Assembly: GCA_001179505.1 (NCBI GenBank)
Contig: CDMY01000499.1
Coordinates: 1-64,000, forward strand
Direction: 5' to 3'
Length of the DNA stretch: 64,000 nucleotides
Origin: Vitrella brassicaformis CCMP3155
Lineage: Eukaryota; Protista; Chromerida
Within the stretch, counting starts at the first letter, position 1; every line of letters starts with the position of its first letter. The notes under the pieces are model-generated. The model saw only the letters and a program-made list of their open reading frames with translations, ran no database searches and had not been told where the DNA came from. Both the position numbers and the translations under genes were made by a program. Shown in pieces: positions 9,203-31,093 of this stretch.

Positions 9203-11778
9203 TCAGTTGGTGCCATTGCCATTGCCATTGCCGTTGTTGTGGTTGTGGTTATGGTTGTGGTGGTTGTTGTTATTGCCGTTTCCATTCCCGTTTCTGCCGT
9301 TTCTCTTGCGTCTCCTAGCCCTTGCCAATGGGGAATCGGTATGGTTTGCCGAGGGCAGTGTGAGCGCCCCAGGGGGCGGCAGCTCGGGCACGCGCCAGTG
9401 CAGGAGGTCATAGTGGTCTGGGTGGGGGTACCCTGCACACAGACACACTCACACAGAAACATGCACACATGCATGAGCAGAGAGGGAGTGGTGGACTTGC
9501 CTGGCCCTTTCTTGAGTAGGCCCAGAGTGGCTGGGGAGCTGTATCGGTGCTCGAAGTATGGGTGCCGCCTCGGCCGCCCCTTGGTGTCCAATGGCAGCCG
9601 CAAACTGCCCTCTTGCGGAAGCTGAAAATACACGGACGCAGGAGAGATGGAGAGAAAGACACAAGCAGACAAGGAGCCAGTGTGTTGAGCTGGCGCTCCT
9701 TCCTCCATTCGACTAAGTTCTGACCTCGAGTTTTTCGAATGTGTGTCTTGCTTCCGTCCGGAAGACGATGACGTCACCGTACTCAACCGGGGGGATGCCT
9801 GCATTCCATCCCATCCCATCCCCCCCACACATGGCACCATGTGGTGGGCAGAGCTCAGGCAGGTCTAGTAGGTCTGGTCAGCTCACTCACCGAGCCCCTT
9901 CCGCGGCTTGGCGTCATTCTGCTCGAACCGGAACCTCTCGGGCGAGTCCTGCCTTGTGAGCACGGGACGCTCCTACAACACGCAGACACGCAAGGTAAAA
10001 GCTCTTGTCGGTGTCTCTGTCTTGGGGTGTGTGTGCGTGATCGGGGCTGGCTGATGCACTCACATATGGGTGTGGCGAGATACACGCGGCCACACCGCCG
10101 CTGGACAGCTCCCTGCACATATTGCAATCAACCGCATAAACAGCAGCGTAAGTGGGTGGATCTCTCTCTCTCTCTCTCTCCCTGTCTTTCTATCTGTCTG
10201 TCTGTCTGTCGCTCCTCCCGTCCATTGGCACACCGGTGCTGTATGACGGGCGCCATAGGTGGCCTGAGTGGCCTCCGCGGAGGCAGCTCACTCTCACCGC
10301 CCTCTTCGCCGCCCTCCTCGCCACCCTCAAACCCACCTGATTGATGGGTGGATAGATCATGCGCATGTCTCTCCTTTCTGGGGCATGGATTCTGTGCACC
10401 TGGGGTGTCTGCATACCTGATGCCGCTCGTCTGAGTTGGTACTCGGGGTCGAATCTGTGCATTGGTGAGAAGAGCTCCGAGGCGGACCGACGCATCTGGA
10501 GCACCCTTTGCTGCAGCCAGGGATGGATGGATGGATGGGCCCACAAATGATGAGATGATGTGCACAGGCGACCAGGTGTTGCATTATTGCCTACCATATC
10601 TGTGGAGACATTCTTCAGACTGGCAGTGCAAACAAACAAACAAACAAACAAAGGAACAAACAAAGGGGAGACACAGCCGATAAAGATCCATGTGTGTCTG
10701 TGTGGGGGTAGCTGTTCTTGCTCACTTCCCGCCGATGATGCCCTCGTGCTCCGTCTGAGACAGACCTGGGCAAACAACATCCGATCGTCTAGCCCTGTGC
10801 AATCGCGGAATGGATGATATCCTCCTACCTGATCCCTTTCGTCTGAGACCGTCGGTTGAGTCGAATCGATGAAAGGGAGACGACCCACGGGTAGGAATCA
10901 CCACCTTCGCCCCTACACGAAGGACGTCAACACACAAGCACACCAACACACACACAGAGAGCATTTCTTTCCCCATTCTTTCCTCTAGGCTATCTATGAC
11001 ACTCACTGGGGTCGTATGGCTTCCAAGGCGGCGGCTGTGAGACACTGGGCCTCACCCTCGCCTTGCCGGGAGTCCGCAGCCTTGCCCTCTCATTCTGCTG
11101 CCCATACGCACCCTTGTACACCACGGGCAGCTCTGCGTCGATCATTTTCTTGGGCTTGACCGATCCCATCATGAAGCGGGGGTCCTCCCATTGCTGGCCC
11201 CCTGCAATGGGGTAGAGGGGCGGCCGGTGGGGAGGGGCGAACTTGCGGCGGCCGCGGGGGTCTGCAGACTTGGACCGGAGCTTCACGCCCTTGGATGTCA
11301 CCTGGAGACACACACAGAAGAGGCAGAGGCAATATAGAAAATCTCTTTATCGGATTTGCAGGCTGCAGCTCACGGCATGCAGCCAGTGCCATCCCGAGTA
11401 CTGGCCCGGGTGGACAGCCGCCCCAGGCACATCCACCCGCCGCTTGCTCAGGAACCCATAGGTGACGAGCGTCGATGGCAGAGTCTGCACCTCGACACAC
11501 GGGCCCCTCTGCTTCCTAGTGAAGCCGTAGACGCCACGAGCTGCAGTCTCCTCTTTGGGTGCCGCAAAAGGCCCGCGTTGCTTGCTGGGAAATCCATAGA
11601 CAGCACGGGCAGGGGAGCGTGGCCGCGTGATGACCGGGTGGCCCACAGTGCAATCCTCGGGTGGGATCAGGTGCATCAGGTTGCCGGCTGACTTGCTCAG
11701 TTCCAGCACCCCATCCCCATCCATCCAGGGCACGAGGGGCTCACATGAGCCCGGCTTCACGTTGCTCTCCCACGCCAT
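9203..11778 (-). CDS. Hypothetical multi-exon Pro/Arg-rich protein with YGFxx(K)QR repeats and an N/G/H-rich tail
   Basis: Coding-like segments 11347-11778, 10990-11313, parts of 10190-10888 and 9203-9448, separated by microsatellite introns. Exon structure only partly resolved. Confidence 0.5.
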
Positions 11779-11856
11779 GACACACGTCGGTTAATTCGGG
11801 ACTCGCGAAGCCTGCTGAGAGTGGCACGCTCTTACCGTCCAAAGTATTTGTCCGTA

Positions 11857-13627: not shown

Positions 13628-13927
13628 NNNNNNNNNNNNNNNNNNNNNNNNNNNNNNNNNNNNNNNNNNNNNNNNNNNNNNNNNNNNNNNNNNNNNNNNN
13701 NNNNNNNNNNNNNNNNNNNNNNNNNNNNNNNNNNNNNNNNNNNNNNNNNNNNNNNNNNNNNNNNNNNNNNNNNNNNNNNNNNNNNNNNNNNNNNNNNNNN
13801 NNNNNNNNNNNNNNNNNNNNNNNNNNNNNNNNNNNNNNNNNNNNNNNNNNNNNNNNNNNNNNNNNNNNNNNNNNNNNNNNNNNNNNNNNNNNNNNNNNNN
13901 NNNNNNNNNNNNNNNNNNNNNNNNNNN
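13628..13927. other. Assembly gap (300 N) flanked by poly-G
   Basis: N run. Confidence 1.
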
Positions 13928-15497: not shown

Positions 15498-16030
15498 TTA
15501 CCACTGCCATGCGCCCACTATCATGCCGATCACAGTAAAAATGCCGATCACGATGCTGAGGATGGTATCAAAACATTCTGGCTTGGCGTACGTGAACCAC
15601 CCACATTCGTCGTCGTCCTCTTCCTCCCCAACATCTGCAGACACAAACGCAGACAGGCAGACAGACAGACAGGCAGGCAGACACACACACACAGGTGAAG
15701 ACTTTCTTCCCCCCTCATACATGCTGTCTACGTTCCTGTCTGACAGACGCACCTGCTGGGCCAGCTGATGCGGCCCGCACGCACACTCTGGAGCCGATCG
15801 GCAGGGCATCGCAGTCGATGGATGGATTGAGCCGGGGAAATTCTTTGGGTCCCAATGCCTGTGACTGCCTGTGACAGTCAAGTAGATGTCGAAGCAAGTG
15901 TCGCCACTCCGGACCACCACAACTCCCCACAAGGCACTTCTGCTGACGTGGGAAGAGGACAAAAATTAATCACCACGCCGAGGCAGAGGACCAGCAGAGA
16001 CACGTGCGACACAGGGAGTCCGGGGAATGG
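15498..16030 (-). pseudogene. LysM-domain + shared TM-anchor paralog, frame-disrupted
   Basis: VVVRSGDTCFDIY and LNPSIDCDALPIGSRVCV (the two halves of a Cys-type LysM) lie in different frames. A phase-1 intron then leads to DDDECGWFTYAKPECFDTILSIVIGIFTVIGMIVGAWQW*. Confidence 0.6.
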
Positions 16031-16673
16031 GTGAGTGAGCGAACCAATGGGATGGACACAAAGGGCCGGGCAAACAGCTGGCAGGAGGGAGGGAATCAAC
16101 CAACTCGGAGCGATCAAAGGAGACGGAGGGGCAGCTGTTTCGATGGCCTGATGGACGAGGATTACTTTGGGATTGTAGCCCGTCGCTGTCTTCGGGCGGA
16201 GAGCTGTCTTCGCGGGAGGCCGCGGGAGTGATTCGAGCAATCAGAGAGAGAGAGCAGGTCTCGCGCCGGCGCAACTCAGAGGGAGGGGAGATGGAGGATT
16301 GCTTCTCGTGTGTAAATCAAACTCCCTCTTGAATTCCGCCTTCGGTGGAAGGCAGGTAGATGCTGCCTAGGTATACAATTCTGCAAGCAAGAGCAAGTAT
16401 CGGGGAGGCCCATTGAGTGGTGGTCTCACGTGGGGGCCTGCCCCCAGTCGACAGTCTACTCAACCGCCATCGTGATGAAATTTTCCTCCTCCGTCGGGCT
16501 GGCGGGACTCGCTACGCTTTCGCCGTTCCCCGAAATGCATGCAAAGCCCCCAAGCTCGCATGCAAGCCCCCGCAAGGAAACCGAAGGAAGTGCTAGTTTG
16601 GCCCCAATTACGGAAACGAACACTTTGTTTCGTAAGAGCGTGCCACGCTCGTGAAACTCGCGAGTCCCGAAAG

Positions 16674-19600
16674 ATGATAGCTGTCCTTCTGCTGGCTCTG
16701 CTCGGCAGAGCCTCTGGGCAATGTAAGTGGCGGCCGAGACAATGGCAATTCTTTTTTCACAGCGTTTGTGTGACTGTGTGCTCACGTGTGCTCTCACCTG
16801 CTTTATCTCAGCGACAAATGAGGCGGGCTTCAGGGCGCTGTTCGGCACGTCAGCCTTCGTCGCACCGACATGCTCGTCCGCAACGACAGTGTCTAGCTCG
16901 GCTGACTCAGGATCTGGCTCTCTCAGAGAGGCGCTTGGCATGCTGGAAGCGGAACAGCCCGAGACGGAGACTACCATTCGCTGCATCCGCATCGATGGGA
17001 GTATTAGCGAAATCACTGTACTTAGCCCTCTCACATTCAGCGGCTCCAACGTCTACGTCTTCCCTCAAAACCTGGACGATGCCAGCACTTTTCCAGTGCT
17101 CAAGCCCGCCAAGCGAGATATAGAGGTGCTGAATGTGGATTCTGCCACGGGGCTCACTCTCGCCGGTCTGCGCTTCACCAATACCGGATCTGACCCCTTG
17201 CAGAGTAGCGACCAAGCAGCAACATGCGTTCGTGTTCATCATTCTCAGGACCGGGCCCCGATGAGCGTTGCCTTCTACCGAGTATCCGTTCAAGAGTACA
17301 CGATCGTTGCCTTTCGGACAAAATACCATGCCGCCGTGACTATTGGACAGGGCGAGCGGGATAAACAATACGATGGCTTGGTTTTCTTTACGGAGTCCGC
17401 CATTCACGGCAACACCGGGACTACTTTGGAATGCAAGGCCCAGACTATAACAATGGCATGAGCGTAAGCCTCCGATACAGCCTCGTTTCCGGCAATCTTC
17501 TACACTACAATGAGTATTGGTCGGGTTATACCCCTTATTATAACGTGAAGACATATTACTGTTCGCATCTCTTGATCCACGCGAGTACCTTCGAAAACAA
17601 TGTGGCCGTTGATGAGTCCCAGGCGAATGGCATCTTTTTTACGCCAGCCTTGACAGTCACCCAGTCCCTTTTCCGTAACAACCAGGCGCCTGCCTTTATC
17701 TTTTATCTAAATGGCGGCACAACCATTGAAGCAAGCAGCTTTATCAACAACAAGCCGAGCTCTTTGAGGGGCAGCTATACGGGGATACTACATGCCCACG
17801 GCCCAGCCATCACAATTTCGGAATGCCTATTCCATGGAAATCAGCCTGGTGTCGGCGAACTCTTGCAATCCAGCAACACACCATTCGAAGAAGGGACGGA
17901 TATTATCATCAGAAGGTCGACGTTTCGTCAGAATCGACCTCAAGACGCCGATGATGCCGATGAAGCAAGCGAGCGACATGTCCTCGCTTTTGATACCTAC
18001 CGCCACGCCGAGGTCGTTGGCAATTGTTTCATCGAAAACGAGATGACCATAACAATTCATGCGACCGATCGAAAAGAAGACCGCCTTCCTACCGAGACCG
18101 TTACAATCACCGGCAATGGTTTCATCAAGAGAACGGGTGGCAGCAGTGATGTCTTGTACAAGTTCGAGAACCCAAACGAGTATCATGAGGGCATAACAGT
18201 TAGAGACAACACGCAACGATGCGCCGACGTATGTGGCAATGGGCTGGTGATGCCCGGCATTGAGGAGTGTGATGATGTCGGGACACCTACCAGCACTGCG
18301 ACACCAGCAAGCGGCGATGGCTGCAGTGCGTCATGCACGATTGAAGAGGGATGGGAGTGTAACAATCAGAAAACATATGGTTACGAAGGAGAAGGGCCTT
18401 CTGTCTGTACAGGTTGGTGGAGACAAGAAGGCAGAGACAGAATGTTTTCTTACTCGTACGCATTGTTGCGTGATTTTTGCAGCTCGGCCGATGATCCCCA
18501 CCCTCAGTACTGAAACCCTCAGCATTCGCATATTGCCTTTCGCAGTGAGCATCGCGCTCTCCGAGCCAGCCAAGTCCGGATCCTTTGAGGCCGCCGACAT
18601 CATCCTTTCTGGTGCTGCTGAGGCATCCATTACTTCTCTGCAAACCGTCTCCAACCAGCGCTTCACAGCCAATGTGCAGCCTACAAGCGGTGGCACTCTG
18701 AGCATTCAGCTGACCGCTGGCAAAGTGGAGATGCACAATGCGGCGGGCTACTTCAACCAAGATTCCAACGTTTTGACCGTCACCATCGGTGAGTACGTGG
18801 ACAGGCAATACACTGAATACGTACTGTTGTGACCTTTCAGATGCATTCAGACCGACACCCGTCTTGGCCGCAACGACAGCTTCTCCTGATGGCATTGTGA
18901 AGAGCGAGTCCCCCTTTAGTGTGACAGTGACATTCGATGAGCCAATACGGGCTTCGACACTGATTTTGAGTGACTTTGCCACTACAAACGCTTCTGTTGT
19001 CAGCGTCAGCGAGCTGGGGGCTTCTGGCGACACTTTCAGTATTGGTGTAGCGCCAGATGCAGACGGCGGGATAAACGTGCAGCTTCCGGAAGCCATGACT
19101 GAGGACCTTGTAGGCAATCCGAATATGGCTTCAAACATCTTAACAGTCATTTACGGTGAACAGAGAAACACTACCTCCTTTCAGAGAAACACTACCTCCT
19201 TTTCTTCTCTATGTATGTCTGTGCTTCATTTCTAGAGACGCCGCCAACAACAATACCGCCAACGCAAGGCGCCGGACCGCCGGGTTCGTCTTGCTATCGG
19301 CTGGCATCAGACTGTTTTTGTATGTGTCCTCAGACTCCGGTGGAGGTGATGGGCCACCAGACGGCGGGAATGGTGGCCCTGGTAGTGGTGACTCTGGTAA
19401 CGGTGACCCTGGTAATGGTGGCCCTGGTAATGGCGGCCCTGGTGACTGTTATTGCCCTAATTGCCCTGATCCTCCTCCTTGCGTCTGCGAAGACGCTTTG
19501 GATAACATGTTTCCTCCCTCGCAAGAGGCAGACATTTCGTCTGGAGGAGCCGAGGGCGATCCGGCGGAAGGCTGCAGTACGAGACTTGGCACCGGTGGTC

Positions 19601-20486
19601 AGCATGGGTTGCAGGAGTTCATGGGCATGAATTTTCTTTCTGTGTGTAAGTCTCGCATATGAATTCGGAGTGTGTTTCTCATGCATGCAGGCTTCCGTAT
19701 TACGCATGCAAGGACTCACAGCACATGAAGACCATCAGTCTATCCGAGACCACTTTTGTCACCGTCCTCGAGGGCTCGACCAATGACGATACGCTCAGAG
19801 GCAACTCGAAAGACAACACTCTGATCGGAGGAGACGGCGACGACAGCCTGGCTGGGCGCGGAGGGCGTGACCAACTGATTGGTGGCCGAGGATCTGACAC
19901 ATTCGTCATCACGGATGAGCCGTGCGACGTAACGATCCTTGACTTCGAGACCGGCGCATCCCACGACCAGCTGAACCTCCGCATCTTTCCTTCCATCACA
20001 AGTATGGAGGCCCTCGAGCAGCGGATGACGAGCGGCAGCGTGATCATCGACATCGATGACATGCACAGGGTGACGATAGCGAACCTCATTCAAGAAGAGG
20101 TCTTCGATCCCAGATACTTTCTCCTCAGCGAGGGAGCGGACGAGGCAAGAGACAAAGGCGACGACGAGTGCGGCTGGTTCGCCTACAGCCGGCCCGAGTG
20201 CGTTGACACCATTCTGTCCATCGTGCTTGGAATCGTCGGTGTTGCCGGCCTAGGGGTTGGCGTGTGGCAATTCGCACACAACTTCTTGAAGCGCGGCCAG
20301 AAGCCGACAGAAGAGAAGCCGACCGAGAACGAAGAGGGGATGGATCACCGAAAGCGATCCATATCCGACACTCGAGACAGCCGCAAAAAAAGCTACCTCC
20401 AGAGCAAATCCGAGCGGCGAGTGTCGGGTAGCAATCAGGAGGAAAAGCAATCAGGCGATGAGGTCGCTGCTGTCAATCGCGTCTGA
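16674..20486 (+). CDS. Gene A: type-I surface protein (signal peptide, beta-helix, CGNG..EECDD Cys repeat, 2 Ig-like, Gly/Pro linker, RTX repeats, TM, tail); one frameshift near 17435
   Basis: MIAVLLLALLGRASGQ; repeated S(T/L)FxNN beta-helix rungs; CGNGLVMPGIEECDD...GDGCSASCTIEEGWEC; two Ig-like exons 18483-18788 and 18841-19155; GGDGDDSLAGRGGRDQLIGGRGSDTF; TM ILSIVLGIVGVAGLGVGVW. Confidence 0.85.
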
Positions 20487-21016
20487 GCTTTGCTTTTGCA
20501 AAGTCCGAATATTGGATCTTTCTTTTCTGTCTTATTTATGCAGTCGGTCATCAGACGATTTTTTTAATGCATGTCGGTCATCAGACAGGTTTTTGCATTT
20601 CTCATGTGTCAAGTCTGCTGCAAAAACCTGTCACTATATTGCTAATCGATCGATGGTCACTCTATGTGTCACCTGTGCCGGCAAAAGCCAGTCCTTTGTG
20701 CTGTGTGTCACCTGTCGAATATGTGTCTCCAACCTATTTTAATTTTATGTGTGATTGCAGAATCAGAGTCATGCAGGCCATCACACAGACCCAGAAACAT
20801 AAGCCAGAACCATACATGACACATACACACGACTTCACACACCTACCGGCAGAACCAACTAAGACAGCCGCGCACGCCGCGGGCAAGCCGGAATGAGATG
20901 GGAAAAAAATTGCGTAGCAGAGCGTGTTTCGCACTGCCACCCATGCACAAACGTGCACAAACTCTGTGCACTCCAAACCCTACAAACCCCCTGCCGCCGC
21001 TCGAACAACAGAGCCC

Positions 21017-21666
21017 TCATACCATCGAGAACAAGGATGAGCAACACAGGTGGTATGAGGTGGCTGTGCTGATGCCGGACAGGGCAAGGGCTGCCAGCAG
21101 CACGATCACCTTGATGCAGACGGACAGCACCAGCTTGTACCACACCAGACGGCGGCAGAAGCGCGCAAGGTTGATGAGCGGCGGAAGGTCATCCAGAGAG
21201 CCGTACCTGAGGCAGAACAAGACGGGTGCGTGTGCGCGGATGTGTATGTGCTTTGAATGTGCATTACATACTTGAGAATGTCGGCAGCCTCCACGGCAAG
21301 GTGCTGCACGAGTCCCGGGCCACCCATGTCCTCCCCTCCCCCACAAAAGGCCACGGCGAGACCTACCTACGCCTGCACACCAAACCACATGAGTACACGC
21401 GCCTTCATCTAAAGAGTGCTTAAACAGCAGACGTTGGCCACGCGCAGGACCGACCGCTGATGGGCTGTCATGGAGCACACACACGGCACGCTTCTGACGT
21501 GATGCGTTGCCCGCATGCATGGCCGCACGGAGCGCACCTGTCTGCTGAGTGTCTTGGCGACGGCGATGTGTGTTGGGCCGCACACAGAGGCCGCAGATCC
21601 GCCGGGTTTTGTCACATGAGCCCCAGATGTGCGAGGGCTGAAAGCCACTGCATCGTCAGATTCCAT
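21017..21666 (-). CDS. Small hypothetical membrane protein (tentative)
   Basis: MESDDAVAFSP... first exon and a last exon with a hydrophobic stretch (LVLSVCIKVIVLLAALALSGI). Internal splice phases not fully reconciled. Confidence 0.35.
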
Positions 21667-21851
21667 CGTCAAGTTGCCTGATGAACAAGCACATGGTGTC
21701 AGTGGCGGCCTTTATTGTGTCGTGCTGTGAGTATCTGCCCAACAGCGGCAGCTTGACTGACCTCCATACCCTCGGTAGTTGAAAAGTGGTGGCACTGCTT
21801 AATGGGCCATCCACCAACACCCATGAGCCACACCGCTCATGTACAGGAGCC

Positions 21852-23587
21852 ATGGCGACGTTTTGGATTTCGAGGACACGAGAGATCTGCGAGCTTAGAA
21901 GCGACGGAAGGAGTGTGCTGTTATCGCTCGTCCCCGTTGGTTCTCTCGAAGATCTCCACTGCAGGGCTTACTGCTGCAGCTACGCGATGGAGTATCATGC
22001 ATCAGACGCCACATCGCAACCGCAGCCCCTCACCAAGACAGCCAAGGTGTCGACTCTGCGGCCTTATCCATACTACCGATGGACTCAGCTCTTTCGCGTC
22101 GTGGTGGTGCTGCTGGGTCTCGCGTACTGGCTCTACCGTTCACCGATAGACGAGCGGATAGGTGAGTGCCACGTTCTTATCTGTCCATATGCATCCTTGG
22201 CCAGTACATACGTCTGCACGCGTGTTGATCTGTCACCTGTGCGTGTGCAGATCGGCTGTGGCAGGGGATGAGGTTGACGTGGTTTGTTCGATTCGATACC
22301 TGTGAGCCCATCGTGGCAGCGTACGCGTTCATCGTCTGGGTCAACATGTTTCGCTTCTTCGACGCCTTCTGCCCATTCCTGCAGAGGTTTCGCATTATCC
22401 AGACAGGTATCCGGATAGGCGGCTTGAAGCTCCCCGACACGATGCTGCTGAGCCGTTTCTCTCTCGTTTGTGTCTGCTCCTCTCTTGCAGTGCCTTCGAG
22501 GGTGGAGCGGCTGTGGGTGAATGGCGAAGTGGGCCACGGCACCTTCTCCTACTTTGCCTTTCTCGTCCCCATGCTGGTGTTCGATTACTTCCACCCAAGA
22601 CGGTGAGTGAGGGAAAAATGAACGAATGAATAAGGGGCATTTATTCCATCGGGAGTATTTTGCGAATGAGCTCTCCCGCTGTTTGTGTATGTCAGCGTGT
22701 TGCCTGCGTGGACGCCGACGCTCGGTCAGCTGGTGGGCCAAGTTGCGCTGTCAGTGCTGGTCTACGGTACGTTGCTCTGCACGTGGACGCATCTTTTCCA
22801 ACTTGTGTTCCTTTCCACCTTCACTCACTCGCACAGACTGTCTCTTCTACGGCATCCACACGCTGGTCGGTCGGTCGGTCGATGCATCTGGGACACTCTC
22901 CACCGCACGAAACAAACATACCTTCCGAATGAAATGTGCGATGTGTATATCTGTGGCTGCCTGGCTGCAGTACCACAGGTGGCCGGCCGTGGCTTCCCTA
23001 CACGCCAAGCATCACTCCATGAAGCCCCTCGCCGGCAGCGATGTGGTGCGGGTGTCCGTCATCGATGGCCTCTCCCAGGTCCTCTGCTCTGCAGCAGCGG
23101 TCAACATCTGCCGCTCCCACAGCCTCGCCAGGTCGGGGCACTGGCCACCCACCTGCTTACACCCGAAAGCCGTTGTGGCTGTGCATCAATGCGTCCGTTT
23201 GTGTCCGTTTGTCTGTCGGTTGACCAGGTTATTGCACAACGTGGTTATCACCTATTTGCTGACCGAAGCGCACTCACAGTATGACTTCCCGTGGTCCATC
23301 CACCGTCTGCTGCCATCGGGCCTCATGGGCGGGCCCATCAGACACGAAATACACCACCACACGGGAAAGGTACATATGCGAGCTGCAGACAGACAGACAG
23401 ACAGACAGACAGTTAATGGATGGATGGATGGCCCTTATCGATCATGCGCTTCTTACGTACCATTATCTCTGTCTGTCTGTAGGCCTACTTTTCGCAGTTC
23501 TTTTCCTTCTTGGATCGGTGGAGTGGCAATGAGCTGAGCGAGGCGGAGCTCGACGTCGCGCTCCAAGACTTTGCCTGGAGGCCCTAA
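21852..23587 (+). CDS. Fatty acid hydroxylase / sterol desaturase superfamily protein, cholesterol 25-hydroxylase-like
   Basis: His boxes (YGIH..., HAKHH, HEIHHH), the EAHSQYDFPW motif, TM segments, and C-terminal YFSQFFSFLDRW. About 8 exons. Confidence 0.88.
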
Positions 23588-24583
23588 ACAAACGAATCGG
23601 CCTGTTTTCTACGAGCCAAGTAGTTATGTATGCGTGTACATGTCTGTATGTGTGTGTGCATGATATCGGCCGAAGGCCAGTCACTTTAATGCGATCGATA
23701 GAGAGAGACGGGAGCTTCTTTCTTGTGCCGCATGTGATAGCTCGCTCACGAGGAACTCAGATGAATGGAGCAAGCTGTGGGAGAAATCGCAACTGGCTCT
23801 GTCTACTCACCTGGGAGGGGCGGGACCTTTCAACCAACCTGGGTAGATAGCATCCACACATACATACATGAATACACTGGACTGACTACGGGATCGATTC
23901 GGGGAGGGAGCAGGAGGGAGTGGTCAGTCGGGCCGGGCAATTAAGTAAGGGCCACGCGGCGCAGCGTGTAATGCACGCTGCCTGCTTCCACGATATATAT
24001 ACACATCAGGGGGAGCGGATCGCATTAAGTGAGTTTTCCCATGCGTGAAGTCATGCATGGCTATGATGGATGGATGTGTTGCGCGTGGTTGGTGACGGAC
24101 CCACGACTTGATGCAGCATCTACTGAATTCATCCCAGTCAATCACATCATTCATGCATTGAAGCCATCCACATCGATATCACTCCATTGATTGACTGCAT
24201 TGTCTGTGCGGTCAGTGCACTTTGACCAATCAATCATTCATTCATTCATTCATTCGTTCACTCACTCACTCATCCATTCTCGAGTCTGTTTCAATGAGAG
24301 TGTGTTCTCATCAGACATGTTCGCACGGAAAGATGAGAACTTGTTGTTGTGTGGCGAGATGTCTGTCTGTCTGCAGCGGCTGATGGCTCTTTGCAGCGGT
24401 TGCTGCCTTATCCGGCCGATGATACTTTTTTGAGCTCACCATCCAACCTTTCGCACAGTCCTTGCCTTGCCCTAACTACTGTCACTTGGAGAGTGAGCGA
24501 TTTACTGAGACACGAAAAATAGTATGTCGTCAGACTCACAAAGAAACAACCGACAGCACATCTTAAGCTTCCATGCACCGAAA

Positions 24584-27500
24584 TCACACATTCACACACC
24601 CAGGAGGAGCAGTCTGATCCTCATGAGCCCGGGGCGCGGTCTCCTCTTCAGCCTCCATCTCATATTCATGGGCCCGGGGTGCAGTCTCCTCTTCAGGTTC
24701 CGAGTCATGTTTATGGACTCGTTTGTCGATCCCCATAGAATCCAGCCGGGCCTTGTCCGTCACGTCTCTGTCCACTTGTCGCTCAGATTTTGTCTCCAAG
24801 ATGCTCTTCGCTCGTGATTCGCGGGTGTCAGACTTCGAGCGCTTTCGTGCATCGGTCGTGGCCTTCGGCTGGTCTTTCCCTGTTTCTTCCTTGCGCTTAC
24901 AGAGGCATTTTCTTACGAAGGCCCACCCAAAGCCGGCCACACTGGCCGCCACAGCAAGGATGCCGCCAACGATGCTGAGGATGGTATCGAGACATTCGGG
25001 CTTGGCGTACGAGAAAAACCCACATTCGTCGTCTTCCTTCCCAACCTCTCCTTCGTCCAGCAGGAAGAAGTCGGGATTGGTCATCTCCTGCGGCGTCCGA
25101 TGGAGAATGCGCACCCGGTTGCTCTCGTCGAGATTGATGATGACGCTGCCAATGGTCATTCTCTCCTGGATATCCTTCATGCTCTTGATGGAAGGAAAGC
25201 TGACGAGATTGAGCCGATCGTGCGTACTGCCAGTGTCAAAGTCGAGGATTGTCACTTCGCCAGGCTCCCTGCCGATGACAAAGCTGTCTGCTCCTCTTCC
25301 GCCAATCAGCTGGTCATCGCCGCCCCGTCCATCCAGCAGGTCTGCCCCGTCACCACCTAAATTCAAAGGGAAACGATGCGGGCCTCCATACGCGTACGGC
25401 ATGTGTACACACCGATGAGGGTGTTGCTTTGGCTGTTGCCGCGCAGAGTATCGTCGTGTCTCGACCCTTCCACAGTAGCGATAGGGCTGCCCTCAGCTAG
25501 AGTCATGAACTTCCTGCTTTCTGAGTCTGAACAGGACACGCGCACCTCTACACCTGACAAGACAACCAAGAAAAGGGGAGACTGTGCAGACATGATCTGC
25601 CGGCATTCCTGCATTCATTCATTAATTCATACTTCCTGTGCCATAGTAAGAAGCTTGGCATCCTTCTGCCGGATCGCCATCCGCTCCACCAGATACAATA
25701 TCTACCTCGTCAAGGGGAATGGGGATTACATTTGGTGGAAGGGGCGGCGTCGTGGTGCCATCTGACGGATCAGGAGGTCCTTCATTTTGGGGATTCTTAG
25801 GGCTGTCTGTAGTGTGAGACCCGCCTGGAGAAACACAGAGAGTTAGGAAAATACGCATACGCTTTGCTCTTCCCTTCCCTGGCGGACCGGACGATTTCTC
25901 TGGAAGAACAAGAGGAGACATGCAATAAATAACAACAAACGAGTCCTGCCTCACCATAAGTGACGATCAATATATTGGACGCGACATTAGGATTGCCAAG
26001 CGTATCGTCTATCTTCTCGGCAGGTAGCTGAATCTGTATGTCCCCGTCTTGTTCCCCAGCAATCGAGACACTGATGTCGAAGTGCTGGCCTGTTGAGCCC
26101 TTCTCTTGAATGCTGGCAACCGAAGCGCTCACAGGGACGTGTGAGCGTCCCGTGAGGACGAAGTCGGTGGTTTCTAGTGTGTCGACGTCGATAGCTTTTT
26201 GGAAGCTGACCGTTACAAGGAACGGATTTGTCATCGTGACGCCGTCACCAAAACTGCTTAGTAGGACGGGCTCTGGCTTGCTTGTATCTGAAGAAAAAGG
26301 GAACTGAACACCTTGCTTGTGACAAAGGAAAGGTGTCTCAGTCTTGCCTATGGAAATGGTCAAGACTTGGGACGCTTCATTGAAGTGTCCAGGAGCATTC
26401 AGCAGCTCCACTCGACCTTCCCTCATCTGAAAGCTCACGTCTCCTTGTGTGTCACTGACTGGCTGTACGTCGATGGTGAAGTCCTTGTTCGACAAGCCTT
26501 GCAGATTTGTCAGCGAGACTTCGGCACTACCCGACACTTGAACATCGGTGACAGCCAGCGATTCGGTCTTGGCAGGCTGAGAGAAGGCGATCGTGAGAAT
26601 GAACGGGCTGCCGCCATATGTCTTGGATCCGGTGCTAAGGGAAGGTATCATTGGGCGAGCTGTACACGAGGGGGAAGAAAAAAAAACACACACACACACA
26701 CATACATACTGCTTTACACTTCAGTATGTGTGCTTCCTTTTTTCGTCATGTGTCTCACGTGTACAGACAGAAGGCCCTCGTCCATAATAGGATGTCTGTT
26801 GCTCACACTCCCATCCAGCTTCAACTTGGCACATGTCGTCACATCCATCGCCACTCTGTGGGGCCACTGGAGTGTGTACTGTGCCAATATCGTCGCATGT
26901 CTCGATTCCCGGCATGACCACACCGTCTCCGCATACATTGGCACACCTTCGAGTCTCTGAGTTGTCATCAATCGTCGCGTAGCTCTCGTCCGCAAGGTCA
27001 GCTGGACTGTGTAGCCAATAGGACTCTTGACCCGTTTTCATCAGCACGCCGTTCCTTGTGATGGTAAGCGAATCAGCACCACTTTGTATCTTTTTGGTGA
27101 CCCACATCATGCAGGGAGGAGTGTGCTCCACAAGATCGTTCTCCACAAAGCAATTGTCCACGATCTCAATGTGTGTCCCTGGAGCGAACAGTGTCATTGA
27201 GATTGGATAGTTGATTCCTGTATTTTGACGAAACGTTGACCGCTCGATGGTCCCTGAAGTCGACCCGAAGACAAGTCCTCCAGGATACTCAACGGTGCTC
27301 GCGCCGACAAGGTTCGTCATCTTGTGGTTGGCTTCGAAAAGAGAATCAATAATGGTGAAGCCCTGAGGCACAGCGTCGACCCAGATAATACTTCTCCAGT
27401 AGTTTTCCTCATGATCTCGACTAGAGAAGCCGGTGTTGCCAGTGAAGTGGCAGCTCTCGACCGTCAGTGGCGCTTCCGAGACGAAAATAAGGTGTCCGGA

Positions 27501-30500
27501 CTGCATGTCGCTCTTGAAGGTCGAATGTTGAAGAATTGCTTCTTGCCCAATGTCGATCAGTCGGATGTCGATCAGATCGATTGCCCGGTCTGGCATGCAT
27601 TCGCACCGGTAAAATGGATCGTCAGGGTAGAGCGTAGGGTAAGAACAAGAGCATCCTGCCGTATACTGATTGTTTTCGAATGTCGCCTCATGAGTGATCA
27701 CCAGACATGTCCGAAGGGAGACTATTTGGCGGTCAATAAGAGGAGTGACGATGTTCTTCCGATCATCGATGTCATTTGTATGAAGATCCCAATGAACGTC
27801 TATGTAGTTGCCGTAGATAAGGCTGTTCTTCAAGGCGAGATCGTAGAAAGGAGGCTGAAGTGAGTTCGCAGCGCATGTAATCGCTGACCCTTCAGTTCCG
27901 TGTATAGCCGATTCCCAGAAAGAGACATTGAAATTGGTCGATGTTGTGTTGTCTCCAGGGGTTGCAATTCTCACGCTTGCGAATTGATTATCCTTGCTGT
28001 TGCTGCATTGCTCGATGGACACTCTGTAGAATGCGACGCTCGCCATGCCGACGCCTTGCTGGTTCTCTATGTGAATACAAGAGCTGCCCGTAGCGGACAC
28101 AGCCGTGCCTTCATAATTCGTAAACCGAATACCCGCTACGGTGAATCCGACCGATCCATCAACAGTCAGGATCTCCGTGTCCTTGAGTTGTGATTTCAAT
28201 ACGGGAAACGAGTCCGGATCGGCAAGGTCTTCCGAAAAAAGATATGTGTTGCGACCTGCAATTAGTATTACACGTAACGTAACATCCAGCACCTCGTGTA
28301 CCGCACGTGTATCGTTCAGCACCTCTGAAGGTGAGGGGGCTTAGCAGATTGATTTCGGTGATCCCTGCCGAAACGCGGACGCATCGGATGGTCGTCTCTG
28401 TCTCGGGATCTTGGGCTTCCAGAGTGCCGAGTGCCTCCCTGAGTGTGCCGGCTCCTGAATCAGCCCCGCTTGACACTGTCACTGTAGAGGTGCACGAAGG
28501 GGGGACAAAGTCAGAGGTGCCAAACAGGGCTCTGAATCCAGCCTCATTTGTCCCAGGTACACACGCGGCGCCGCAGCCAACGAGGTCAAACACACGAACA
28601 TGACCGCAGTTGGAACCATAGTCCATTGGAGGGAGGGGGAGAGGAGGGGGGGCACCGCCATCATTCCCGCGAGCACCGATGGCCAAACGAGCGCCATCAC
28701 TGGACATGGCCACTGCTGTCCCCGATTGGTCATTGGCCGCTTCGCCATCGATGTCGGCGCCGACTTGAGTCCAAGTGGATCCAACGAGGTCAAACACGCG
28801 AACATGACCGCTGTTGGAACCACCGCCATCATTATAGTAAGCACCGATGGCCAAACGAGAGCCATCACTGGACATGGCCACTGAATATCCCGAGCTGTCA
28901 CCGGGCGCTTCGCCATCGATGTCGGAGCCGACTTGAGTCCAGGTGGATCCAACGAGGTCAAACACGCGAACATGACCGCGGCTTCCAGAAGCATATGTTA
29001 CGCCATCATTCCGAGGAGCACCGATGGCCAAACGAGAGCCATCACTGGACATGGCCACCGACCACCCCGAATCGTCAGCGGCCGCTTCGCCATCGATGTC
29101 GGCGCCGACTTGAGTCCAGGTGGATCCAATGAGGTCAAACACGCGAACATGACCTCTTTTGGAACCACCACATGTCCCGCAGGCACCGATGGCCAAACGA
29201 GAACCATCACTTGAGATAGCCACTGCTCTCCCCGATTGGTCACCGGCCGCTTCGCCTCGGCGCCGACTTGAGTCCAGATGGATCCAATGAGGTCAAACAC
29301 GCGAACATGACCGCTACGAGAACCACCGCCATCATTCTCAACAGCACCGATGGCCAAACGAGAGCCATCACTGGACATGGCCACTGAATGTCCCGAACTG
29401 TCCCAGACCGCTTCGCCATCGATGTCAGCGCCGACTTGAGTCCAACTGGATCCAATGAGGTCAAACACGCGAACATGACCGTTGGCATCACCGCCGCCAT
29501 CATTCCAGTAAGCACCGATGGCCAAACGAGAGCCATCACTGGACATGGCCACTGCTGTCCCCGATTCGTCACCGGCCGCTTCGCCATCGATGTCGGCGCC
29601 GACTTGAGTCCAGGTGGATCCAATGAGGTCAAACACGCGAACATGACCGCTGTTGCTCGCATAGCGAGCACCGATGGCCAAACGAGAGCCATCACTGGAC
29701 ATGGCCACCGACCACCCCGAAAGGTCACCCTCTTCGCCATCGATGTCGGCGCCGATTTGAGTCCAGGCGACGGTCTCCTCAAGCTCGCGCAGAGAAGAGG
29801 CTGGCTCAGTGGCGGCCTGCGCGGTAGTCTCAGTGCACTGATCAGCTTGGTCAGGGAGCAGCTTCACTAACTGCCATCAAGCAAGCAAGCAAGCAAATGT
29901 GCGCCTATATCTATGCAGACGTGCGTCATTCTGTGTGCACCCCTCTGTGCTGGTCTGTGTGTGTGACTTGAGGGAATAACCTTAGAGCAGATCATCTTGA
30001 AGTAGTCCCCGGCTTGCTTGCGAGCGACCTTTCCGGCCGTTGTGTCGCCCAGAGAAGTGATGAATACGGCGGCGTTCGCTAGGAAGCATCGCTCCGCGCA
30101 CACGTCCCAAGGCATATCATCATCAGACAACTTACCTGACGAATGACAGGGAAAAAAGAAAGAGAGAAAGAAACTGCTCTGCTCTGCGTCTCTCTTCGGT
30201 GTCTCGGTGTGTATATTGAGGGGAGGGGGAGAGGGGGGGTGGCTTTTTGTGTACGAGTGAGGTACCGTGGTCCTGGATGGCCGCCTCGTAGATGTCAAGG
30301 TGGTTGCTGAAGTACTCAAAACAGTACGTATCGATATTCTGCATGCGAGAACACTAAGACTCTCAATCTCCTCCTATTTTCTATCTTATGCTTCGTTACC
30401 TCCATGGCGCAGATGTTCTCGATAGTGCGCAGCGCTGTCTGTACAGCCACACATCCCCTGCCCTTGAGACCCGCCGTATTGAGTCAACTCTCGAGTGCCG

Positions 30501-31093
30501 TCTTGGCGTTTTTGAGGCAGCCGTTGGTACAGGCGGTCTGCAGATCGGCATTGTTGGCTAGCATGGCCACTTTGCTTGCGTTCTGGAGAAGGTCGCTATA
30601 ATTACACGGTTTAGCTGTAGATATGGCAAGCAAAGCACTACAGTACAAGCAAAGCCAGCCGGACTTTTTCGGTAGCTATCTAAGCATGTTTCTACCATTC
30701 AGCGCAGCCTTGAGTTGAGTGAAAGTGGGACAGCAACCTGCCCTAGCGTCTTGGCACTCATTGCCCGTAGTGAGCATGCCTAGGTTATCGAAGTCGCATC
30801 CGAACTAAAACGCGAAAGAGAGGACAAGGCACATGGTACATGTGCGGCCATCCTGAGTCTGTTGTGCTGTGTGCACACCACTGAAGACGTGAATGTTGAT
30901 CCTGTAAGCGTTTTGTAGAGGTTCTGGAAACGGTCGTGTACAGGGATCGGTCCCACCTTGGACTGCACGCTAAGTGCCACGCTGCGCCGCCATCACCAGG
31001 GGATCATCACACATGACACACAGCCATCTGTGATGGCTGTGTGGCTTACGTCGCGAGTCCGAGAAAGGCGAAGGAGGCGATGTAGCACAGCAT
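24584..31093 (-). pseudogene. Gene B: paralog of gene A with an added N-terminal Cys-rich domain and 7-blade FG-GAP-like propeller; in-frame TGA (30484-30486) and 7-nt deletion (29256/29257)
   Basis: Signal peptide MLCYIASFAFLGLAT|VALS. Exons splice in frame into WTQVGADIDGEA...SVAMSSDGSRLAIGA x7, then TNEAGFRALFGTS (same as gene A), beta-helix, CGDG..ETCDD, 2 Ig-like, RTX, DDECGFFSYAKPECLDTILSIV TM and tail. Confidence 0.85.
28570..29770 (-). repeat. Seven highly similar coding tandem repeats (~160-200 bp) encoding propeller blades
   Basis: gaggtcaaacac at 28582, 28786, 28954, 29131, 29289, 29457, 29625; agcaccgatggccaaacgag (one ggcacc variant) also seven times. Confidence 0.95.

Follow-up and report, generated by a model that had tools for sequence, protein, structure and literature searches.

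An RTX module and cap ahead of a predicted membrane anchor in a family of frame-broken genes of Vitrella brassicaformis CCMP3155

Reviews define RTX repeats as a feature of type I secretion in Gram-negative bacteria, and the occurrence of such repeats in two neighboring genes of Vitrella brassicaformis CCMP3155, a free-living alga related to malaria parasites, raises the question of what an RTX module may do in a spliced eukaryotic gene, upstream of a membrane anchor. The two genes, here termed A (16674-20486, plus strand) and B (31093-24584, minus strand), are located in a window of 64,000 nucleotides (i.e., the whole stretch of DNA analyzed) from scaffold CDMY01000499.1; the window sequence is identical to the scaffold. 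An initial reading of these letters (referred to as the original prediction) had described A and B as a domesticated family of calcium-dependent adhesins or receptors built from bacterial adhesin modules. Our analyses support, with a probability of roughly 0.55, that A and B represent calcium-stiffened, glycan-binding surface proteins with a role in adhesion or recognition, from a Vitrella-specific family that was recently disabled in this strain.

RTX roll, cap and anchor

Each of the two genes encodes five 9-residue RTX units (four to five had been predicted), the last three of which are canonical; these units are located at 19767-19901 (plus strand) in gene A and, together with the cap that follows them, at 25058-25473 (minus strand) in gene B. 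Against the Pfam profile HemolysinCabind (cut-off 23), the gene A array scored 46.7 bits, and the post-intron portion of the gene B array scored 18.6 bits (database searches were performed exon by exon or with the protein identifiers that the databases returned). As the triple repeat was found in 0 of 20,000 shuffles, it does not represent a chance pattern. In six sequences, every one of the five units has Asp or Asn at the calcium position, and these conserved ligand positions make calcium binding a candidate property of the RTX units.

The approx. 75 residues after the repeats (19902-20126, plus strand, in gene A) show weak similarity to the extreme C-terminal residues of bacterial RTX proteins, with matches that stop near the end of the best-scoring bacterial sequences. 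A structural model of the RTX module, prepared for the gene B copy (pLDDT 91), overlays residues 492-617, i.e., the very end, of a Pseudomonas lipase (Z 18.3; 1.9 Å over 124 residues) and shows the parallel beta-roll of RTX proteins, consistent with the roll that had been anticipated. Because the model covers the C-terminus of the lipase, Vitrella appears to have the complete end of a type I secretion substrate, now placed upstream of a membrane anchor. RTX proteins are defined by their repeats together with export via an uncleaved C-terminal signal (PMC3034196); in the Vitrella proteins, which belong to a eukaryotic host, the cap is located 119 to 157 residues from the protein end and ahead of a transmembrane helix, so that type I export does not apply, and no transporter genes were found among the annotated neighbors. 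As calcium-driven folding of RTX repeats requires a C-terminal cap (PMC8953716), the cap may have been kept without an export route.

The surroundings of the RTX module agree with the original prediction. In both A and B, a conserved Cys-pair motif is succeeded by a single hydrophobic helix and then by a predicted cytoplasmic tail (motif, helix and tail at 20160-20486, plus strand, with the helix at approx. 20208-20279, in A; 24584-25057, minus strand, with the helix at approx. 24982-24914, in B), and the motif RKRS-S-DTR-SR is present in every tail. Exon 1 of gene A (16674-16722, plus strand) encodes a hydrophobic, signal-peptide-like N-terminus, as does the putative first exon of gene B (31093-31050); signal peptides were assessed by eye only. 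The spliceosomal introns were also confirmed. Gene A consists of seven exons (16674-16722, 16812-18412, 18483-18788, 18841-19155, 19236-19283, 19334-19597 and 19691-20486) with GT-AG introns throughout; four joints, including 16722-16812, were found in the RNA-like run X7, and transcript contig L002 spans every exon. For gene B, transcript contig L003 covers the gene from 28646 to its end and reveals a GC-AG intron, a micro-exon of 12 nt and, within the RTX array, a further intron; an apparent break in this contig is merely a gap of Ns. Two gene B introns (28322-28256 and 25412-25357, the latter inside the RTX array) are absent from gene A. A chimeric assembly or contamination can be excluded for gene A, as shown by the RNA joints and by two DNA-like runs without differences across 16645-19748, and is unlikely for gene B given the RTX-array intron and transcript L003.

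All Vitrella RTX copies form a single clade (100/100) on a long branch. Named RTX matches were mostly from alphaproteobacteria, which provides a lead only. The Cys-rich repeat that accompanies the RTX module in Vitrella was found in 0 of 132 non-Vitrella RTX matches, and RTX repeats were found in 0 of 141 Cys-repeat matches; as no outside match holds both, the combination was probably assembled in the Vitrella lineage. Within the length and size limits that apply to these searches, no relatives of the RTX module in other eukaryotes were found by word-index searches (in one case among the 8000 candidates listed) or in the full library and the Atlas, nor did scanning metagenomes, genomes and viral contigs for the pattern reveal a eukaryotic relative outside Vitrella. 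RTX-type repeats have been annotated in some other algal genomes, and we do not claim a eukaryotic first.

Beta-helix, Cys repeat, Ig-like domains and the N-terminal part of gene B

The claim that the family as a whole is built from bacterial adhesin modules holds for the RTX module and cap, which appear to be the only clearly bacterial-type part, and needs to be qualified for the others. The right-handed beta-helix of gene A (17041-18216, plus strand; frame-broken) matches the Pfam family Beta_helix (PF13229; E 1.9e-8) and is preceded by an N-cap (16812-17040, plus strand) with 68-73% identity among A, B and paralog C. In gene B, the N-cap (28323-28551, minus strand; 73% identity to that of A) is followed by a single exon with an open frame for beta-helix and Cys repeat (26759-28255, minus strand), in which Beta_helix stayed under the cut-off. 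A model of the helix from this exon (pLDDT 55) matched pectin-lyase-like helices at Z 20-24 (best 23.8; rmsd 3.0 Å over 291 residues), i.e., tailspikes, the adhesin PfbA and polysaccharide lyases, with enzymes and adhesins tied. A search against 1.84 billion representatives found beta-helix sequence matches in Vitrella proteins only.

The single Cys-rich acidic repeat (18217-18412, plus strand, in A) exceeded the cut-off of TIGR02232 in both genes (40 bits in A; cut-off 20.8), as predicted, while the DUF4215 likeness suggested along with it, as well as Big_5, stayed below cut-off in Pfam. As its relatives include a protein from the eukaryote Mastigamoeba, this repeat is not specifically bacterial. 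Within the repeat of gene A, 18220-18276 is near-identical to paralog C with far diverged flanks, a possible gene conversion. The two Ig-like domains, each encoded by one exon in gene A (18483-19155, plus strand; 18483-18788 and 18841-19155, with joints found in reads) and split by the GC-AG intron (26347-26288) in gene B (25955-26659, minus strand), were matched weakly, by Big_12 in one copy (E 1.1e-5) and by Big_5 in 4 of 7, with no plasmid match and no clear PDB match. A linker separates these domains from the RTX module; it is rich in Pro and Gly in gene A (19236-19597, plus strand; exons 19236-19283 and 19334-19597, in transcript L002) and comprises the micro-exon (25899-25888) and an exon at 25824-25633 in gene B (25554-25899, minus strand).

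The module list of the original prediction lacked two parts of gene B. An FG-GAP array with seven unit starts (28600-29767, or bounded at 28653-29767, minus strand) was identified by tandem repeats (TRF period 168, 6.7 copies), unit lengths and matches to FG-GAP_2 (58-59 bits); relatives with 30-39% identity are found on bacterial plasmids. The units are approx. 81% alike in DNA, suggesting recent internal expansion. Upstream of this array, a signal-peptide-like exon (31093-31050) and four Cys-rich exons (30804-30696, 30614-30400, 30338-30266 and 30135-29981) make up a putative 5' region (29981-31093, minus strand), which exon phases suggest to belong with the rest of gene B. No family match was found for this Cys-rich region when Pfam was searched exon by exon.

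Paralogs, selection and frame breaks

Vitrella carries at least six copies of this family, extending the predicted pair. Roll, cap and anchor recur in the paralogs C (CDMY01001045), D (CDMY01000217) and E (known as a transcript only), and the whole layout is common to C and D. Over part of the last exon of gene A (19775-20234), second contigs with approx. 93% identity occur in three runs and point to a sixth copy, a closer paralog of A. In paralog E (L023, 3-329), a different beta-sandwich-like domain replaces the second Ig domain, and paralog C has an apparent short intron of its own in the helix (L005, approx. 9436-9481). The 3' ends of transcript contigs L002 and L024 appear to be chimeric.

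Pairwise dN/dS values, which were computed on stop-free exon pieces and for which several pairs were saturated, ranged from 0.10 to 0.17 for roll and cap (unsaturated dS), from 0.03 to 0.28 for the anchor and from 0.15 to 0.28 for the Ig domains. Roll and cap have long been kept under purifying selection. Identity among paralogs was 31-67% for the helix versus 60-85% for roll and cap; a conserved base with a variable tip would fit recognition proteins.

The original prediction took A and B to be functional; both genes are broken in this assembly. All five copies examined (A, B, C, D and E) are out of frame in CCMP3155, yet transcribed. Gene A has a first break at approx. 17438, which leads to a stop after 232 codons (17438-17461, plus strand), and a second at approx. 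19702, in the start of the last exon (19691-19727, plus strand), where the joint 19597-19691 enters a stopping frame. Runs X1, X2 and X7, from three studies, match the window at 17438, and a transcript contig carries both breaks; these data exclude an assembly slip as the source of the breaks, and hidden introns that span them can also be excluded, as the transcript contains none. Conversely, contigs from the marine sediment metagenome X11 carry one additional letter at the first break and a loose end two letters shorter at the second, leaving the frame open at both sites, and the X11 peptide at the second break resembles that of the paralogs. In gene B, an in-frame stop is present at 30486-30484, within the putative 5' exons, and a frame break at approx. 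29262, in unit 4 of the FG-GAP array (a 158-nt unit); as the latter falls within a repeat and is read from the assembly alone, a slip is possible. A frame shift at the end of the Cys exon of paralog C is present in both genome and transcript, paralog D shows several breaks, and paralog E has a frame shift in the linker. The CCMP3155 copies probably represent recently disabled, transcribed pseudogenes, as shown for A, and the damage probably characterizes the strain rather than the family.

Public automatic annotations (CEM17990, CEM17993, CEM18028, CEM39693/4 and CEL94344) cover the same loci, some under Ig-like or beta-helix names, and differ from our models in that they divide each gene into two to three models, mask the breaks and describe neither family nor function; gene A is cut into products of 232 and 669 amino acids, and gene B into products of 128, 368 and 1266 amino acids. 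The reference strain and its annotation can thus mask genes of this kind, as their copies are broken and split.

Several observations concern the surroundings of these genes. A gene of the fatty-acid hydroxylase family (21987-23587, plus strand; annotated with 316 amino acids) lies between A and B, and a short multicopy element lies directly upstream of the gene A start (16600-16674), where runs X1 and X2 reach approx. 10x the depth of the gene A body and have numerous loose ends (16671-16674); a partial copy of the element occurs at 11795-11835. Head to head with gene A, a LysM-like piece (15501-16030, minus strand) is apparently frame-broken; Pfam did not confirm LysM in this fragment. The exon after it encodes a Cys-pair anchor and a transmembrane helix matching those of the family, with 61-65% identity. 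An assembly gap (Ns at 13628-13927) is flanked by homopolymer runs on both sides. In L004 (13901-21129), AAA_34 and Helicase_C_4 are annotated in separate genes, although the two domains usually belong to a single strawberry-notch protein; this may reflect a break or a model error.

Possible roles and comparison with known systems

If A and B are calcium-stiffened, glycan-binding surface proteins, the signal peptide would route the chain into the endoplasmic reticulum and the single helix would anchor it, with the outer part on the cell surface; this topology, that of a type I membrane protein, is predicted from sequence. The fold match of the model suggests that roll and cap may originate from the C-terminal end of a type I-secreted bacterial protein. 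No longer an export signal, they would most likely provide a calcium-folded, stiff base beneath the two Ig-like spacers, as the behavior of bacterial RTX proteins suggests. The beta-helix, which is distal and varies more than any other part, would most likely bind glycans on a substrate, a bacterium or a neighboring cell, and the gene B protein would have an FG-GAP propeller in addition. Several points weigh against this reading. The alignment behind the RTX model held 44 non-Vitrella RTX rows, which bias it toward a roll, so that the model represents support rather than proof; the helix model is weak, and its fold includes enzymes as well as adhesins. The tree shows no supported bacterial sister of the Vitrella RTX clade. 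The X11 evidence consists of one contig per site at a depth of approx. 3, the second of which may derive from a paralog, and an intact full-length copy was not seen among the copies examined. Overall, the predicted domesticated family stands in that it is native, spliced, paralogous and selected, while its function, including surface location, binding and calcium dependence, is what we infer. A bolder proposal, which we consider doubtful, is that Vitrella acquired the calcium-folding C-terminus of a type I-secreted bacterial protein and reuses it as a shuffled, membrane-proximal block in many unrelated surface receptors, and that the beta-helix members provide variable recognition of bacteria, substrate or coral, with intact copies in nature and loss under culture.

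Alternatively, A and B may encode polysaccharide lyases, hydrolases or epimerases that are tethered to the membrane and have a catalytic helix, acting in wall remodeling or biofilm digestion. The epimerase AlgE of Azotobacter has a layout of beta-helix plus RTX roll, and the Vitrella roll would correspond to its R-module; the models match the AlgE A-module (Z 22.3) and R-module (Z 13.7), and most of the top fold matches are carbohydrate-active enzymes. Profile searches matched no enzyme family, though, the fold matches are tied between enzymes and adhesins, and helix identity among paralogs falls to 31-38% with large indels, the shared residues appearing structural; we thus consider a tethered enzyme unlikely. 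A little less likely still are signaling receptors or calcium sensors that relay ligand binding or RTX folding through the anchor to the tail. The conserved tail motif and an anchor that is among the best-kept parts, and is reused in the neighboring LysM-like gene, are consistent with this function, but the tail is short, without a catalytic domain, its motif may be a sorting signal, and seawater calcium would be expected to hold the roll permanently folded.

Two further explanations concern the frame breaks rather than the fold. With every examined copy broken, and D repeatedly, the family could be dead in the species, its copies being relics of a former surface family with leaky transcription; the low dN/dS values and the few breaks per copy indicate recent loss instead, and X11 is open at both gene A sites, making this scenario improbable. 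It appears most improbable of all that recoding or phase variation at the breaks allows a switch from the anchored protein to a short N-terminal fragment that is secreted, and back. Every copy is transcribed and spliced, and the first gene A break sits in a short C run, as such regulation might suggest, but site, size and kind of the breaks vary among copies and include stops, RNA equals DNA at 17438, and a shared slippery motif was not seen.

A spliced, selected and membrane-anchored RTX module in a relative of apicomplexans shows that roll and cap can be useful without export, probably as a calcium-set structural unit, and adds new candidates for attachment or recognition in an alga that is benthic and associated with corals, and about whose surface biology little is known. 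If the bolder proposal given above is true, the beta-helix members would represent a first eukaryotic RTX adhesin system. No literature linking Vitrella with RTX was found (one key review, Templeton and Pain 2016, is outside the coverage of this search); the RTX terms searched for are absent from the supplements of the chromerid genome paper (Woo 2015), and the extracellular domains in its Appendix 5 do not include RTX. The chromerid CAST multi-domain proteins (PMC4501334, Appendix 5) resemble the family described here in being amplified surface proteins that cross the membrane once and have Cys-rich outer regions. By description, they differ in having a coiled-coil tail that is conserved and a broad distribution among eukaryotes, and RTX is not mentioned for them.

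Bacterial RTX proteins (e.g., Pseudomonas lipase PML, serralysin, CyaA block V) share the nonapeptides, the beta-roll and the whole C-terminal cap with the Vitrella proteins, which differ by the internal position of the module, followed by a transmembrane helix and tail, by an N-terminal signal peptide, by introns and by the lack of a toxin, lipase or protease domain. The RTX_toxin profile matches the repeat part only (34 bits versus a cut-off of 1000), without pore-forming or acylated regions, and the serralysin match is limited to profile positions 312-448 of 462, without the N-terminal zinc protease domain; identity as an RTX toxin or a serralysin was therefore rejected. Azotobacter AlgE epimerases share the order of helix and RTX module at the fold level only; the Vitrella proteins have a helix of only 7-9% identity to theirs, Ig and Cys spacers and a membrane anchor, and profile and full-library searches provided no sequence match to the AlgE A-module. 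The bacterial RTX adhesins LapA, MpIBP and SiiE are held at the N-terminus, with RTX repeats at the far end. Like these adhesins, the Vitrella proteins unite Ig-like spacers with an RTX roll and a domain that may bind a ligand, but the polarity is reversed, with the RTX module beside the membrane, a C-terminal anchor, only two Ig domains in place of a long Ig array and no N-terminal retention module. The RTX module is known, while its setting is apparently new and the family apparently undescribed.

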